From positions 190,911,555 to 190,975,554 of the forward strand of contig NC_068981.1 in assembly GCF_001194135.2 (NCBI RefSeq): DNA of 64,000 bases, given 5' to 3'. Below the pieces are notes generated by a model, which had not been told where the DNA came from, made no database searches, and worked only from the letters and a program-made list of their open reading frames with translations. The first letter of the stretch is position 1. The number at the start of each line of letters is the position of its first letter. Shown here piece by piece: positions 6,711 to 58,143 of the stretch. Source of the stretch: Octopus bimaculoides. Lineage: Eukaryota. The translations under genes and the position numbers were made by a program.

Positions 6711-7567
6711 TTGGGTCATCCCATAAATAATGCGGTCTTTCCAGGTAGTAATTTTACATTGTCCTTATTTTTAGTGCAAGATTTGAAGAGTGCAGTTCGA
6801 TTTTAACAGTTATTTTTTCAAAGCTGCAATGGAATTTACAAAGAGCCATATTTGGCATATTTTGCTTTATGAGTTCAATAAAGGCAACAGTGCAACGGAA
6901 AGTGTGAGGAATATTAATGCAGTATATGGGGATTGGACAATAAGTGTAAGCCAGTGTCAGCGGTGGTTCCTGAAATTCCAAATCAGAAACTACAGCCTAG
7001 AAAATGTGCCTCATCCTGGAAGATCTGTAGAGCTAGACAAGGATGTCCTGCAAACCCTGATGGAACAAGATCCTATCATAAATGTTGAGGAACTAGCAGA
7101 GAAGCTAGGATTTGGTCAGTCAACCATTTGTCAACACTTGCGCTAAAAGGAAAACAACCATTTTTGGTTTCAAGACAAAAGGTGTTCTTTCATCAGGATA
7201 ATGCTCGGCTCCATATAGCGAGAATGACATTCCAAAGGCTGGAGCAGTTTCAATGGGAAATGATGCCCCGCCCACCATATTCGCCAGACATTGCCCCATC
7301 TGATTATCATTTATTCCAGTCTTCAAAATCATTTGGACGAGGAAAAAATATGAATTCTGTAGACAAGGTCAGAACAGTACTGGAAGAGTATTTTTGATCA
7401 CAGACAAGTGAATTTTGGAAGTGGGGCCTTGCAAGTCTACCAGATAGATGGGAGAAAATTGTAGAAAATGAAGGAGATTATATTTCAAATTGAAAAAGAA
7501 GTTTGTTTATCTTAACTTTGAAAAATAAAAGAAGTATAAAAAAACGCATTATTTATGGGAGGACCCA
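6711..7567 (+). mobile_element. Internally deleted mariner transposon 1
   Basis: TIRs tgggtcatcccataaataatgcg and cgcattatttatgggaggaccca, TA-flanked, transposase remnants inside. Confidence 0.92.
6829..7493 (+). pseudogene. Mariner (DD34D-type) transposase pseudogene
   Basis: N-terminal HTH region MEFTKSHIWHILLYEFNKGNSATESVRNI and C-terminal HQDNARLH...PPYSPDIAPSDYHLF. Middle of the catalytic domain is missing; stops and frameshifts present. Confidence 0.9.
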
Positions 7568-8113
7568 TATATATATATATATAGATATAGATATACACAA
7601 AACATATATATGTATAAAGCATATTCATATATGTAAGTATATATGTGCATATACATAAATATATGTATATGTATATATGTAGATATGTGTGTATGTATGT
7701 TTTATGAGTAATGTCTGTTAATTACTTTGTTGTTTTTTTGTTAATGAATGTTTTATTCTACATATTTCATTCATCTTCTTACAGCAACCATTAATTATTT
7801 TACAAAATCATCATAATGTATTGAAATAAATCTGGTTAGCCAGAAAATTATGGTTTTCTGTCATGTTAATTATAATCACCATATTTTATATTGCATTAAA
7901 CTTAGAAAATATTTTCTTACTTTTTTGGTTGCATAGATTCTGTGTAATTGGGAGACTTATTAATGTGTCTTATCTGATTTATAAAGTTTCTGAAACTGTT
8001 ATATATGTATGTAATATATAATTGATTCTTATTTTATCACTGGAGTCTTAAGTATCTCAACAAGAAAATAAACACATGGTTTAGTTTAATATAAATGAAG
8101 TTTTTCATAAATA

Positions 8114-8964
8114 CATGGTCTGATCAATAAGTATCTAGACTGTTGCCATAGTAACAAAGCTATAGCATGCAGAGTGAAGCCGCTTGTTACAGATTGACCT
8201 TGAACTCTGCTGTGCATGCGCACTAAGTTTTAATGTTCTAACTCTCTTCCGCTGATTACAGCAGTGCTTGGAAGGAATGTGTGTAGCTTGTGATCATCGC
8301 ATTGATCATCAATCTGCATCGAATTTTACCAAAAGCTTGGCGATATCTGCTCAGAGGCCTTCGCAAAGTTGCAGAAAGTGTATGGAGAGGAGTGTATGAG
8401 CCAAAACAATGTTGATAGTGACAAACGTTCTGGGAGACCCACAACCAACAGAACTGAAGAAAATATTGCAGATGTGCATGAAGCTGTGAGGGGAAATCGT
8501 CAAATCACCATCCATAAACTATCAGTTGATGTGCAGATTAGTTACAGTTCAGTTCAGACCATTATCACTGAAGATGTAGGTATAAGACGTGTGCCTGCCA
8601 AGTTTGTACCAAAACTGCTTTCATCTGGCAATGCACCTGCTTATTCAGCACAGCTTGTGTACCAGTTTCTGGCTAGGTACAACATTCCCCAGGTTTGATT
8701 ATCATCATATTCCCCAAATTTCACCCAAATTTGCGACTTTTTCCACTTTCCAAAAATCAAACCCCGCTTGAAAGGAAGATTTCAGAATATCAAGGAAATT
8801 AAAGTGAATGAGTTCCAGGAATGCTTCCATCAATGGAAACAGCACTGGATTAAGTGTGTTGTTTCCGAAGGAGACTACTTTGAAGAAGATTAAATGCCAA
8901 ATTGGTATGTGTTGTAGTTTCGTTTTTATAGCACCAGTCCAGATACTTAATGGTCAGACCTATG
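8114..8964 (+). mobile_element. Internally deleted mariner transposon 2 (different lineage from 1)
   Basis: TIRs catggtctgatcaataagtatctagactg and cagtccagatacttaatggtcagacctatg; TA at 8112-8113 and 8965-8966. Confidence 0.9.
8340..8893 (+). pseudogene. Mariner transposase pseudogene
   Basis: QKVYGEECMS..RSGRPTT..FVPKLL fused to (D)NAPAY; YSPNFTQICDFFHFPKIK resembles YSPDLAPCDFFLFPKLK; ends WIKCVVSEGDYFEED*. Confidence 0.88.
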
Positions 8965-11135: not shown

Positions 11136-11453
11136 ATGTAAAGAAAATATTTCAGAATTTTAAATCAAGCCTTCTACAATTGAGATAGCCAGTAAGTTGT
11201 TGTTTAACTTGTAAGAAACAGCAGAGAAATCTCCCTCAATTCCTACCCTTACAATATTGTGAATGCTATTGAGGTATTTTCTCGTAGTCTAAGGCATCTT
11301 TAAATTTTTGGTTTTAATCAAATATTACCTATATATGTGGTAAATAACAAACCAATGTAAGGGTTTTTATGTGATTACTCAACATGATAGAAATAAGAAC
11401 TAAATCAGCCTTAAAAGACACTGTATTATCAGAAAATAGAGAAGATATATCGG

Positions 11454-11517
<64 letters not shown>
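11454..11517. repeat. (AAT)n microsatellite, left flank of the Dong-like insertion
   Basis: Direct reading. Confidence 0.95.
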
Positions 11518-12695
11518 GGAAGCTGACAAATACAAACAAGAAATCAATCTACCTAACAAATACGAAGAAGAAGAAGAAGAAACAACAAAAGCTATAAAAC
11601 AAATGAAATCCAAACTAAAACTAGAACAGCAACGGACCNNNNNNNNNNNNNNNNNNNNNNNNNNNNNNNNNNNNNNNNNNNNNNNNNNNNNNNNNNNNNN
11701 NNNNNNNNNNNNNNNNNNNNNNNNNNNNNNNNNNNNNNNNNNNNNNNNNNNNNNNNNNNNNNNNNNNNNNNNNNNNNNNNNNNNNNNNNNNNNNNNNNNN
11801 NNNNNNNNNNNNNNNNNNNNNNNNNNNNNNNNNNNNNNNNNNNNNNNNNNNNNNNNNNNNNNNNNNNNNNNNNNNNNNNNNNNNNNNNNNNNNNNNNNNN
11901 NNNNNNNNNNNNNNNNNNNNNNNNNNNNNNNNNNNNNNNNNNNNNNNNNNNNNNNNNNNNNNNNNNNNNNNNNNNNNNNNNNNNNNNNNNNNNNNNNNNN
12001 NNNNNNNNNNNNNNNNNNNNNNNNNNNNNNNNNNNNNNNNNNNNNNNNNNNNNNNNNNNNNNNNNNNNNNNNNNNNNNNNNNNNNNNNNNNNNNNNNNNN
12101 NNNNNNNNNNNNNNNNNNNNNNNNNNNNNNNNNNNNNNNNNNNNNNNNNNNNNNNNNNNNNNNNNNNNNNNNNNNNNNNNNNNNNNNNNNNNNNNNNNNN
12201 NNNNNNNNNNNNNNNNNNNNNNNNNNNNNNNNNNNNNNNNNNNNNNNNNNNNNNNNNNNNNNNNNNNNNNNNNNNNNNNNNNNNNNNNNNNNNNNNNNNN
12301 NNNNNNNNNNNNNNNNNNNNNNNNNNNNNNNNNNNNNNNNNNNNNNNNNNNNNNNNNNNNNNNNNNNNNNNNNNNNNNNNNNNNNNNNNNNNNNNNNNNN
12401 NNNNNNNNNNNNNNNNNNNGAATGTGGAATCTAAAAACAGAAACAATTCCTATCATAGTAGGTGCCTTAGGTATAATAAAAAAATATTCAGACAAATACA
12501 TAACAAAAATAGCAGGACTTACAAATATATATAACATACAGAAAATTGCACTACTGGGTACTGCACACATCCTACGCAAAACACTTTCAATACAGTAAAC
12601 ATAAGAGCACCACAGCAAACCACAGCACATACCCAAGGCGCACAGAGCTGCGCTCGGTAGTGAAGTGAAAGCACGTTATAAAAATAAAACTACTG
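11518..12695 (+). mobile_element. 5'-truncated R4/Dong-clade (RLE) non-LTR retrotransposon inserted in (TAA)n
   Basis: C-terminus MWNLKTETIPIIVGALGIIKKY...IQKIALLGTAHILRKTL* resembles R4/Dong/Rex6 C-termini. Short 3' UTR then (AAT)n at 12696-12717. Middle is a 781-N gap. Confidence 0.8.
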
Positions 12696-17054: not shown

Positions 17055-17350
17055 ATGTTGTTCCAGTCGATCCAATCAATACAGCAGCTTGCTTGTGGAG
17101 TTAACTTGCAAGTGGCTGAGCACTCCACAAACCTGCATACCATTAATGTAGTTCTCAGGTAGATTCAGTGGAACAACAGAATGTGACAAGGCTGGCCCCT
17201 TTGTAATTACAGGTACCACTCATTTTTGCCTACTGAGTGGACTAGAACTATGTGAAATAAAGTGTCTTGCTCAAGGACACAAAGTACTGCCAAGAATTGA
17301 ACTTGTGATCTTACGATCATGAGCCAAATGCTCTAACCACTGAGCTACCT
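17055..17350 (-). mobile_element. SINE family C
   Basis: ttccagtcgatccaatc...gtgtcttgctcaaggacac...tctaaccactgagc. Confidence 0.8.
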
Positions 17351-19439: not shown

Positions 19440-19832
19440 TGTGTGTATCTGCCAGAGACCTTCCGTGATATGTTGTGCTTGAGAAGACACGTCAAGCCAA
19501 GTGAAATCATAGTTGAGGCTGTTGCCAGTGTTATGTAAATGGGACCTGTGAAATTGTAATCATGACTGTTGTCAGTGTCTTGAAAATGGCACCTGTGAAA
19601 TTGTAGTCATGGCTGTTACCGGTGTCATGTAAATGGCACCCATAATGGTGGCAGGTAAAAAGCACCCATTATACTCTCGGAATGGTTGGCATTAGAAAGG
19701 ACATCCAGCCATAGAAACCATGTGAAATTAGACTGGAACCTGGTGCAGCTCTCTGGCTTACCAGTTCCAGTCAAACTGTCTAACCCATGCCAACATGGAA
19801 AGCAGACAGTAAATGATGATGACAATGATGTG
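19440..19832 (+). mobile_element. Family B copy
   Basis: ggttggcattagaaaggacatccagcc...ccaacatggaaagcagacagtaaatgatgatg. Confidence 0.8.
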
Positions 19833-19854
19833 CATATATGTGTGTGAGTGTGTG

Positions 19855-19891
<37 letters not shown>

Positions 19892-19894
19892 ATA

Positions 19895-20106
19895 TATATA
19901 TAAATCATTATTATGATTGACCGTTGACTGAACACTATTCAATTTTTTTTCTCTGTGTTTTTCTCCTTGTCTCCGTATTCTTTCTGTTGAAGAGCGTAGC
20001 TCGAAACGTCAAAGACTTTCCGTATTCCCGAGCACCATACTAATACATCCTTTTGTTATTTACACCACCTGTCCTCGTCTATTGTTGTTTTTTCGTACAT
20101 TCTCCC

Positions 20107-20108
<2 letters not shown>
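19895..20108 (+). mobile_element. Penelope-type terminal repeat fragment with hammerhead-like motif
   Basis: ctgttgaagagcgtagctcgaaacg in a pyrimidine-rich segment ending at (TA)n. Confidence 0.45.
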
Positions 20109-20139
<31 letters not shown>

Positions 20140-20249
20140 GTTAATCAATATGTCCTTTGAAAATAAAGTGTACAGGATTTCAGATAAATGCTCTTGATAT
20201 GAGAAATAACTAAAGCCTTAAAGGTATTTACAGATTCAATTAGAGTGAT

Positions 20250-20583
20250 TATATTAGAAAGTAAAAGTAGGAGAAATTATATCATAAAAGTCACAGGAGA
20301 GATACGTCCGTAATATAAACACTATTGTATTAATAAATAAATATATAAAGTATAACTATGATCATTTAAAACGTTTTGAGAGATGTTACGATCGTTTCAT
20401 GAATATACTACCTTTTGAAAGTTAGTATATTCATAAAACGATCGTAAGATCTCTCAAATCTTTTTAAATGATCGTAGTTATACTTTATATATTTATTTAT
20501 TAATACAATAGTGTTTATATCACGGACGTATCTCTCCTGTGACTTTTATGATATAATTTTTCCTACTTTTACTCTCTAATATA
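20250..20583. repeat. 334-bp palindrome (fold-back or MITE-like)
   Basis: Arms 20250-20416 and 20417-20583 are reverse complements with no indels and about 10 mismatches by manual count. Confidence 0.95.
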
Positions 20584-20646
20584 TGTGTGTGTGTGTATGC
20601 ATATATATGTATATGTGTGTGTGTATATTTATTTATTTATTTATTT

Positions 20647-20718
<72 letters not shown>

Positions 20719-20989
20719 TTATATATATATACACACATTTATATATATATATATATACAGAGCAGGGCATAAGTCCGTTAATCGTTAATTGACAAAGTTA
20801 ACATTTTCATTAACAGCTTAGATTTTAAGTTAACTTCGAAAATCATTATCAGACTAATTACCTTCTCTTACATTTAGCTTCTTTTAACTCAAGTCCATTA
20901 ACCCAAACATTTCAATAAAACCAGTATATGTTTAAAAATTTCTATTGTTTTCAGATTGTTTGATCATATTTAATATTGTACGCATCATT

Positions 20990-22806: not shown

Positions 22807-23465
22807 NNNNNNNNNNNNNNNNNNNNNNNNNNNNNNNNNNNNNNNNNNNNNNNNNNNNNNNNNNNNNNNNNNNNNNNNNNNNNNNNNNNNNNNNNNNNNN
22901 NNNNNNNNNNNNNNNNNNNNNNNNNNNNNNNNNNNNNNNNNNNNNNNNNNNNNNNNNNNNNNNNNNNNNNNNNNNNNNNNNNNNNNNNNNNNNNNNNNNN
23001 NNNNNNNNNNNNNNNNNNNNNNNNNNNNNNNNNNNNNNNNNNNNNNNNNNNNNNNNNNNNNNNNNNNNNNNNNNNNNNNNNNNNNNNNNNNNNNNNNNNN
23101 NNNNNNNNNNNNNNNNNNNNNNNNNNNNNNNNNNNNNNNNNNNNNNNNNNNNNNNNNNNNNNNNNNNNNNNNNNNNNNNNNNNNNNNNNNNNNNNNNNNN
23201 NNNNNNNNNNNNNNNNNNNNNNNNNNNNNNNNNNNNNNNNNNNNNNNNNNNNNNNNNNNNNNNNNNNNNNNNNNNNNNNNNNNNNNNNNNNNNNNNNNNN
23301 NNNNNNNNNNNNNNNNNNNNNNNNNNNNNNNNNNNNNNNNNNNNNNNNNNNNNNNNNNNNNNNNNNNNNNNNNNNNNNNNNNNNNNNNNNNNNNNNNNNN
23401 NNNNNNNNNNNNNNNNNNNNNNNNNNNNNNNNNNNNNNNNNNNNNNNNNNNNNNNNNNNNNNNNN

Positions 23466-33759: not shown

Positions 33760-33941
33760 TTGTATAACAGTGCCGGTGGCACGTAAAAGGCACCCACTAC
33801 ACTCTCAGAGTGGTTGGCATTAGGAAGGGCATCCAGCTGTAGAAATTCTGCCAGATCAGATTGGAGCCTGGTGCAGCCATCTGGTTTGCCAGTCCCTAAT
33901 CAAACCATCCAACCCATGCTAGCATGGAAAGCGGGCGTTAA

Positions 33942-33978
<37 letters not shown>
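33760..33978 (+). mobile_element. Family B copy
   Basis: gtggttggcattaggaagggcatccagctgtag...(GAT)n. Confidence 0.88.
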
Positions 33979-33979
<1 letters not shown>

Positions 33980-34138
33980 ATATATATATATATATAGATA
34001 TGTNNNNNNNNNNNNNNNNNNNNNNNNNNNNNNNNNNNNNNNNNNNNNNNNNNNNNNNNNNNNNNNNNNNNATATATATATATATATATATATAAATACA
34101 TGATATATGTATATAGATATATATATATGTATATAATC

Positions 34139-34480
34139 ATCAGCATCATCATCATTGTTTAACATCCGTTTTCCATGCTGGCATGGGCTGGACGGTTTGA
34201 CTGAGGTCTGGAAAGCCAGCGGCTGCACCAGGCTCCAGTCTGATCTGGTAAAGTTTCTACGACTGGATGCTCTTCCTCATGCCAAGAACTCCAAGAGTGT
34301 AGTGGGTGATTTTTACGTGATACTGGCATGGGAGCCAGTCAGGGGGTACTGGCATCGACCACGTTCTGATGGTGCTTTTTATGTGCCACCAGCACAGGAG
34401 CAGTCAGGTGGGCCTGGCATCGGCTATGTTCGGATAGGGCTTTTTCTGTGCCGCTGGCACAGGAGCCAGTCAGGTGGCCC
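34139..34480 (-). mobile_element. Family B copy, inverted relative to the 33760 copy
   Basis: (CAT)n gtttaacatccgttttccatgctggc. Confidence 0.88.
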
Positions 34481-57071: not shown

Positions 57072-58143
57072 CTCTTTAGCATTTAAATCAGATGTATGAG
57101 GCCTAAGTATTTTATTTTCATGTTCAAACTGGACAGATATGGCCTCTCACACCTGTCCTACAATGTCATTCTAAAACAATCACATCATATAAATCTCAAA
57201 GCTATGAGAGAGACATCATCATCATCATCATCATCGTTTAACGTCCGCTTTCCATGCTAGCATGGGTTGGACGATTTGACTGAGGACTGGTGAAACCGGA
57301 TGGCAACACCAGGCTCCAGTCTGATTTGGCAGAGTTTCTACAGCTGGATGCCCTTCCTAACGCCAACCACTCAGAGAGTGTAGTGGGTGCTTTTACGTGT
57401 CACCCGCACGAAAACGGCCACGCTCGAAATGGTGTCTTTTATGTGCCACCCGCACAAGCCAGTCCAGGGGCACTGGCAACGATCTCGCTCGAAAATCCTA
57501 CAGGAGCCAGTCAGGCGGTACTGGCAACGGCCACGCTCAAAATGGTGCATCTCATGTGNNNNNNNNNNNNNNNNNNNNNNNNNNNNNNNNNNNNNNNNNN
57601 NNNNNNNNNNNNNNNNNNNNNNNNNNNNNNNNNNNNNNNNNNNNNNNNNNNNNNNNNNNNNNNNNNNNNNNNNNNNNNNNNNNNNNNNNNNNNNNNNNNN
57701 NNNNNNNNNNNNNNNNNNNNNNNNNNNNNNNNNNNNNNNNNNNNNNNNNNNNNNNNNNNNNNNNNNNNNNNNNNNNNNNNNNGTTCCCTCAACTGTTAGG
57801 GTGTGGCACTTTTTCACGCAGCTATCCTCCTCCATTCTCACCACATGTCCATACCAGCGCAATCGTCTCTCTTGCACGCCACAACTGATGCTTCTAATGT
57901 TCAGCTTTTCTCTCAAGATACTTACACTCTGACGGGTATTCACATTGACATTACACATCCAACGGAGCATACTGGCTTCATTCCTTGCGAGCTTACGTAT
58001 GTCCTCAGCAGTTACAGCCCATGTTTCACTGCCATGTAGCATGGTTGTTCGTACGCATGCGTCATACAGTCTGCCTTTTACTCAATTCAAAACAGTGTTG
58101 ATAAATAGGGATTACATTTAACAGTAATCTGGATGCTAAGGGG
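57072..58143 (-). mobile_element. piggyBac-type MITE, family 1, interrupted by an RTE LINE
   Basis: ttaa|ctctttagcatt at 57068-57083 and gatgctaagggg|ttaa ending at 58147; halves at 57072-57214 and about 58083-58143. Confidence 0.8.
57215..58082 (-). mobile_element. 5'-truncated RTE-clade LINE
   Basis: Stop-free VKGRLYDACVRTTMLHGSETW...ERRLRWYGHVVRM (57783-58080), gap, then family B 3' UTR and (GAT)n tail. Confidence 0.9.

Follow-up and report, generated by a model that had tools for sequence, protein, structure and literature searches.

The question raised by this locus is whether a long palindrome lying among the microsatellites of an Octopus bimaculoides chromosome is a mobile element, a local rearrangement of the DNA, an error of assembly or a source of hairpin RNA. 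The palindrome, 334 bp long with a composition of 75% A+T, occupies positions 20250-20583 of the window, by which is meant the whole stretch of 64 kb that was analysed, a region of 34% G+C with one SINE present in at least 12 copies bearing (TG)n(TA)n tails.

When the mirrored positions were counted base by base about the axis 20416/20417, complementary bases were found in 157 out of 167 pairs (94.0%) with 0 indels and no spacer, which confirmed the two 167-bp arms with about 10 substitutions and ~94% identity that a sequence-only reading had described. A detection of inverted repeats returned the arms as 20250-20415 and 20418-20583 (166 nt, 95% complementary), and a reverse-strand blastn alignment of the palindrome with itself covered all 334 nt with 0 gaps. 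With simple repeats masked it ranks first among the inverted pairs of the 64-kb window, in line with its earlier designation as the strongest structure there apart from the SINEs. Past 20249/20584 the next mirrored positions are unpaired in ten cases out of ten and the edges of the palindrome are thus sharp. Further out only microsatellites show reverse-strand similarity, and for that reason an extended, degraded palindrome reaching into the flanks was rejected. The features of the palindrome and its surroundings are collected in Table 1.

Table 1. Coordinates of the palindrome, its parts and associated features within the window
Feature	Position	Strand	Remarks
Internally deleted mariner, ~860 bp	~6711-7567		TIRs TTGGGTCATCCCATAAATAATGCG / CGCATTATTTATGGGAGGACCCA; Mos1-type HTH_48 domain
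(TA)24 tract	19855-19902		further left of the palindrome
(AT)16 tract	20107-20139	.	110 bp left of the palindrome
Left arm	20250-20416	+	167 nt, 75% A+T, 5 CpG
Left terminal TATA	20250-20253	.	candidate TA or TATA target site duplication (TSD); sequence read directly, putative role as TSD
Centre of symmetry, CCTTTT/GAAAGT	20411-20422	.	mismatched pairs at offsets 0 and 5; no true spacer
Right arm	20417-20583	-	reverse-complementary counterpart of the left arm; 10 substitutions, 0 indels; 5 CpG
Right terminal TATA	20580-20583	.	mirror of 20250-20253, abuts the (TG)n tract; read from the sequence
Compound microsatellite (TG)n/(TA)n/(TATT)n/(TA)~78	20584-20757	.	outside the palindrome

The mismatches between the arms are situated at offsets 0, 5, 18, 31, 42, 44, 57, 104, 143 and 157 from the centre, six of them being of the transition type and four of the transversion type. 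They are weighted towards the centre, with 7 of the 10 within the inner 58 of the 167 positions (Fisher p = 0.033, binomial p = 0.025), a marginal significance obtained with a cut-off picked post hoc. Within the left arm four perfect mini-palindromes are packed into 46 bp at 20358-20403 (ATGATCAT, AAAACGTTTT, ACGATCGT and TTCATGAA), and in the mirrored part of the right arm (20430-20475) three of the four are broken by 4 of the 10 arm differences, which indicates four or more derived changes in the right arm. Palindromes of 8 bp or longer number 5 per arm, compared with ~1.5 expected from the composition according to a rough estimate. Internal direct repeats of the IR/DR type could not be found in the arms, the best one being 7 bp (GAGAGAT) and hence below the mean best (~8) of 300 shuffles preserving mononucleotide composition. 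The coding capacity is nil, the longest ORF with a start codon being 22 aa and the longest stop-free frame 45 aa.

Folding of the palindrome as RNA gave energies of -227 kcal/mol for the plus strand (z -27.9) and -223 kcal/mol for the minus strand (z -36.4), while as DNA it gave -144.5 kcal/mol (z -32.6), and no shuffled sequence folded as well, whether as RNA or as DNA. Scores between -28 and -36 rule out chance as the source of the palindrome. The predicted RNA of either strand is a ~165-bp stem with ten mismatches or wobbles and with a predicted 4-nt loop, a 3-bp stem and then a 1x1 internal loop at the centre, so the modelling of both strands agrees with the ~165-bp hairpin potential proposed earlier. 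In other animals long dsRNA hairpins are known to undergo hyper-editing by ADAR or cleavage by Dicer and, by analogy, RNA from the palindrome, if transcribed, is a plausible substrate of ADAR or Dicer. A hairpin on single-stranded DNA is also plausible. The further suggestion that the duplex could extrude a cruciform appears doubtful, for in the human PATRRs extrusion needs central symmetry together with an AT-rich centre (PMC1851657), and here the mismatches at offsets 0 and 5 as well as 6 G/C in the central 20 bp (20407-20426) disfavour easy extrusion.

The palindrome opens with TATATTAG and closes with CTAATATA. With TA as the TSD, the start of the element proper would be TATTAG or TTAG. 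As TA is self-complementary, a duplication of TA or TATA would merge into the palindrome itself, and the surroundings are TA-rich as well; a non-palindromic flanking duplication of 2–8 bp was searched for beside 20250-20583 and none was present. The compound (TG)n/(TA)n tract begins at the very base that follows the right end and is likely to represent the insertion context of the palindrome. Together with the two tracts on the left side (Table 1) it bears out the TA-rich ends near (TA)n/(TG)n tracts that had been pointed out before.

When analysing the CpG content, an observed/expected ratio of 1.99 was obtained for the palindrome (10 CpG, 5.0 expected), the highest among 1141 tiles of 334 bp, as compared with 0.29 for the window (551 observed, 1915 expected) and a tile median of 0.25 with a 99th percentile of 1.13. 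This is a level ~7 times that of the local background, and a single arm, which at background depletion would be expected to hold ~0.7 CpG, holds 5. Among the neighbouring repeats the ratio is 0.17 for the SINE and 0.37 for the mariner, and the 110 bp directly to the left of the palindrome (20140-20249) contain 0 CpG. A ratio of 1.99 in a window of 0.29 suggests that the arms have spent a short time in a CpG-eroding environment, or have been protected from it, and the palindrome accordingly looks younger or more newly arrived than the surrounding copies, or less exposed to CpG decay. The unique segment at 19906-20106, located between two (TA)n tracts, is CpG-rich as well (9 CpG in 173 bp), and this segment and the palindrome may be two young insertions at a hot spot of microsatellites or else one small patch of unmethylated DNA.

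Both arms and termini were used in searches for copies and relatives. Within the 64-kb window neither the arms nor the 20-nt terminus recur, and no solitary single arm was found. A 22-mer identical in both arms had 0 matches among metagenome, viral and prokaryote genomes, collections that are nearly without octopus DNA. A degenerate terminal 20-mer hit 11 metagenome loci, all of them chance matches with the similarity confined to ~20 bases. A second inner probe gave 0 matches in viral contigs and blastn against plasmids returned just AT-rich Buchnera noise. The three longest stop-free frames of the arms had no match in a set of 5.8 billion proteins. An ORF of the SINE, used as a control, had equally none, and a blank for a repeat with at least 12 copies in the window shows that junk ORFs from this organism are missing from the protein set. 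The terminal hairpin or concatemer junction of a virus was likewise considered and rejected, there being no viral genes or matches nearby.

The reading that is preferred, to which we assign a probability of roughly 0.55, is that the palindrome belongs to the MITE-like, non-autonomous DNA transposons of the fold-back type and was inserted at a TA, with a Tc1/mariner transposase as its possible mobiliser. Its palindromic structure, sharp edges, TA termini, unusually high CpG content and want of coding capacity were observed directly; its mobility, its probable transposase family and its mode of origin we infer. MITEs are non-coding and under ~800 bp, and here there are 334 bp without any start-codon ORF above 22 aa; terminal inverted repeats make up the element in its entirety, with 157/167 positions paired, and the abrupt loss of symmetry at both ends is as expected of a discrete unit. 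TA is the target of Tc1/mariner elements, and the TIRs of mariners are 30–40 bp. An element with this target preference is found in the same window, since the mariner listed in Table 1 has clear TIRs, is active-looking, and is flanked by TA and embedded in (TA)n tracts on both sides. Octopus genomes are also reported to contain many Tc1/mariner and MITE families (PMC13282606).

According to the proposed mechanism a transposase supplied in trans would have cut and pasted the palindrome, which would have landed at a TA dinucleotide beside the TA/TG microsatellite, and insertion at TA would make a Tc1/mariner-type enzyme the likeliest mobiliser. The arms may have arisen when one end of a transposon was copied back on itself, by way of a hairpin or of template-switch repair, and not through mere deletion of the interior; with 167 bp they exceed a mariner TIR several-fold, which points to one end being copied back together with its subterminal sequence and not to two TIRs joined. 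A read-through transcript of the host would fold the palindrome into an imperfect dsRNA hairpin of ~165 bp. At its present locus the palindrome probably does nothing.

Several observations stand against the fold-back MITE. There is one copy in 64 kb, and no relative turned up in the collections searched, which hold nearly no DNA of this organism. The putative terminus TTAGAAAGTAAAAGTAGGAG had no match at 3 mismatches or fewer to the TIRs of the two mariner-like elements of the window, the only possible partners compared, and the ends are unlike those TIRs, the arms are 167 bp and no IR/DR repeats are seen. Sleeping Beauty poorly mobilises MITE-like substrates consisting of long IR/DR arms alone (PMC5224488). 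An IR/DR-type Tc1 element cut down to its long inverted repeats was in turn rejected as a candidate, the direct repeats of the transposase-binding type, of which such elements have two within each arm of ~200 bp, being absent from the arms. The youth of the insertion may also be questioned, as the high CpG content could reflect a locally unmethylated patch that includes the CpG-rich segment 19906-20106. The original proposal of a Tc1/mariner MITE consisting entirely of TIRs is weakened by the arm length, the mismatch to the TIRs and the lack of IR/DR repeats. It had been offered side by side with a fold-back duplication; the structure fits both, and the TA ends, the high CpG content and the TA-sited mariner lean to a recently arrived mobile element.

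The duplication itself, a single-copy local inverted duplication giving a PATRR-like, non-mobile AT-rich palindrome, is the explanation that survives best after the fold-back MITE, although we regard it as unlikely. In such a case ~167 bp of local sequence would have been copied back at the fragile (TA)n/(TG)n tract, by a template switch during replication or in the course of fold-back repair, and the 6% difference between the arms would be later drift. The single copy in the 64-kb window agrees with this, as does the location of the palindrome next to long self-complementary (TA)n, which is hairpin-forming and break-prone, and so does the structure with neither spacer nor indels. Central symmetry drives palindrome instability (PMC1851657), and the accumulation of 7 of the 10 mismatches in the inner 58 positions looks as if survival requires an asymmetric centre; this enrichment is, however, marginal and was defined post hoc, and 6 G/C in the central 20 bp exceeds the 1–3 of the PATRRs. 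The duplication also fails to predict the exact TA/TATA ends, and arms copied from old local DNA would not be expected to have a CpG ratio of ~2 where the window has 0.29 and where the adjoining 20140-20249 is without CpG. That the locus is a unique, young and CpG-rich hairpin, whether as a fragile palindrome of the PATRR type or as a gene for a long hairpin RNA that supplies the siRNA/ADAR pathways, is considered improbable.

A functional hairpin-RNA locus (hpRNA/endo-siRNA, miRNA precursor or ADAR target), which would be compatible with the other origins, is given very little weight. Both strands are predicted to fold into a very stable stem of ~165 bp, and there is precedent for miRNAs arising from palindromic repeats (PMC1784062) and for hyper-editing of such repeats, octopus leading the list (PMC5625713). 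On the other side, this stem is far longer than an animal pre-miRNA, and a search of the palindrome with the Rfam 15 covariance models revealed no family at the gathering score. The best sub-threshold matches were MIR162_1 (30 bits vs 75) and mir-232 (26 bits vs 67), both generic hairpins, and all such matches lay at 24–30 bits against gathering thresholds of 67–75.

Inverted pairs that arose from separate copies do occur in the window. One pair of SINEs at 45704-46050 is placed tail-to-tail with almost no spacer and is 74.5% self-complementary with 12 gaps, and in a second one (33780-34003 / 34098-34319) the copies are 94 bp apart across a run of N. The SINE tails of (TA)n are self-complementary, and new copies may therefore insert in either orientation into older tails; such pairs are potential further sources of dsRNA. 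By the same route two separate ~167-bp repeat copies could have been inserted head-to-head to give the palindrome, and an arm divergence of 6% would be typical of two members of one family. We nevertheless find this highly improbable, as the arms are of equal length with zero spacer, no indel and exactly mirrored outer ends, whereas the SINE pairs are gapped and 74–82% identical, and as no solitary arm is present in the window. An artefact of the assembly or library, for instance a chimeric fold-back read or a gap-closing error, is also highly improbable. In its favour, the scaffold is of draft quality, with N runs at 12 places in the window, and microsatellites, at which contigs are prone to end, flank the palindrome on both sides. 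Such chimeras and errors, however, produce identical arms, and a divergence of 10 substitutions with 0 indels fits neither the error profile of long reads nor a haplotype-level difference and argues against an artefact; the nearest run of N is at 22807 with none within 2 kb.

The region 19906-20583 has the layout unique block – (TA)16 – unique block – palindrome and thereby a surface likeness to a Helentron or HINE. The 3' stem-loop palindromes are 5–10 bp in HINEs (DINE-1-like) and 16–20 nt in canonical Helitrons, and Helentrons and HINEs are recognised by subterminal inverted repeats of 12–15 bp and by insertion at TT or between A and T without duplication (PMC4067079). This candidate was rejected, as a palindrome of 334 bp is too large and no subterminal inverted repeats link 19906 to 20583.

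The closest named relative of the mariner in the window is a SETMAR-like protein of Octopus sinensis. The DNA identity to the copy in that species is 80%, and the same Octopus sinensis locus also matches the SINE of the window at 82–83%. This mariner is furthermore 86% identical to a contig from the JGI metagenome sample 3300002938, a contig without the SINE. A second transposase-like fragment is found at 8100-8900, with an ORF at 8306-8695 and a possible end near 8110 (GGTCTGATCAATAAGTATCTAGAC), and gave no Pfam match. Close to the tracts on the left side of the palindrome a 47-bp unit is repeated 2.6 times (19519-19640), and as the SINE copy at 19595-19833 begins at its 5' side with the last of these units, it is the head of the SINE that has been tandemly multiplied there. 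Fragments resembling the C-terminal part of a reverse transcriptase occur at 57371-58042 (minus strand) and 11384-12598 (plus strand), with LRWYGHVVRM... and ...IPIIVGALG... among their residues; both are interrupted by runs of N, which places LINE-type elements at the assembly gaps. The sole Rfam match of the window at gathering score is tRNA-like (17289-17348, minus strand, 32.9 bits) and lies inside a repeat with 4–5 copies in the window, where it probably marks the head of SINEs of a second, tRNA-derived family. Among the 211 non-repeat stop-to-stop frames of the window none looked convincing as a host exon, and a 132-aa ORF of the window is not on record.

The palindrome, striking and real as it is, is most likely an ordinary case of an already known kind of element. 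Hyper-editing gives its strongest signal in the octopus lineage, where loci capable of forming long dsRNA are also exceptionally dense (PMC5625713), and as a palindromic repeat can give long dsRNA from a single copy, self-complementary elements would matter somewhat more in these animals. Should the palindrome be a MITE, one more family would be added to the cephalopod repeat library, of use for masking and for interpreting clusters of hyper-editing. Should it be single-copy, it would be a rare non-human case of a long, spacer-less AT-rich palindrome surviving in a genome and a natural substrate for the study of palindrome stability. A unique hairpin locus, if true, would deserve notice because cephalopods are exceptionally rich in long dsRNA and in RNA editing. 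Neither the MITE nor the single-copy outcome would overturn current understanding.

Among known systems PAL/PALTA of C. elegans, Angel of zebrafish and FB of Drosophila are hundreds of bp long, consist largely or wholly of inverted repeats and use TA or TTAA targets. They are likened to the octopus palindrome by description only, and FB differs in that its arms are tandem repeats whereas the arms here are without tandem repeats.

The human PATRRs (11q23, 17q11, 22q11) are near-perfect, spacer-less and AT-rich palindromes of 190–600 bp that are situated in unique DNA, are difficult to clone and readily form hairpins or cruciforms, with 1–3 G/C in the 20 bp of the centre (PMC1851657). In its 334 bp, 75% A+T, 94% symmetry and lack of spacer the octopus palindrome resembles them, but the very AT-rich, symmetric centre is replaced by one with 6 G/C and two central mismatches, and PATRRs are single-locus and not transposons.

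Closer in kind to the fold-back MITE is Made1 (MiHsmar1), a human MITE derived from the mariner Hsmar1 and the source of the hsa-mir-548 family, which in 80 bp consists of two 37-bp TIRs and a 6-bp spacer (PMC1784062). It is a near-perfect palindrome that forms a tight hairpin whichever strand is transcribed, and a mariner transposase mobilises it in trans (PMC1784062; PMC5224488). The near-perfect symmetry, the lack of coding capacity and the hairpin from either strand, predicted in the octopus palindrome, are shared features, and the TA target of Made1 has a candidate counterpart in the TA ends here, while Made1 is made of the TIRs of its partner and the octopus palindrome has 167-bp arms, no spacer and ends unlike those of the mariners in the window. 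A Harbinger-type repeat of Xenopus tropicalis is palindromic and heavily hyper-edited by ADAR without a neighbouring inverted copy (PMC5625713). It belongs to PIF/Harbinger, with a 3-bp TWA duplication, whereas the ends of the octopus palindrome fit only a self-complementary TA or TATA; the likeness lies in a single copy which, being itself roughly a palindrome, makes long dsRNA in Xenopus and, if transcribed, would do so in the octopus.
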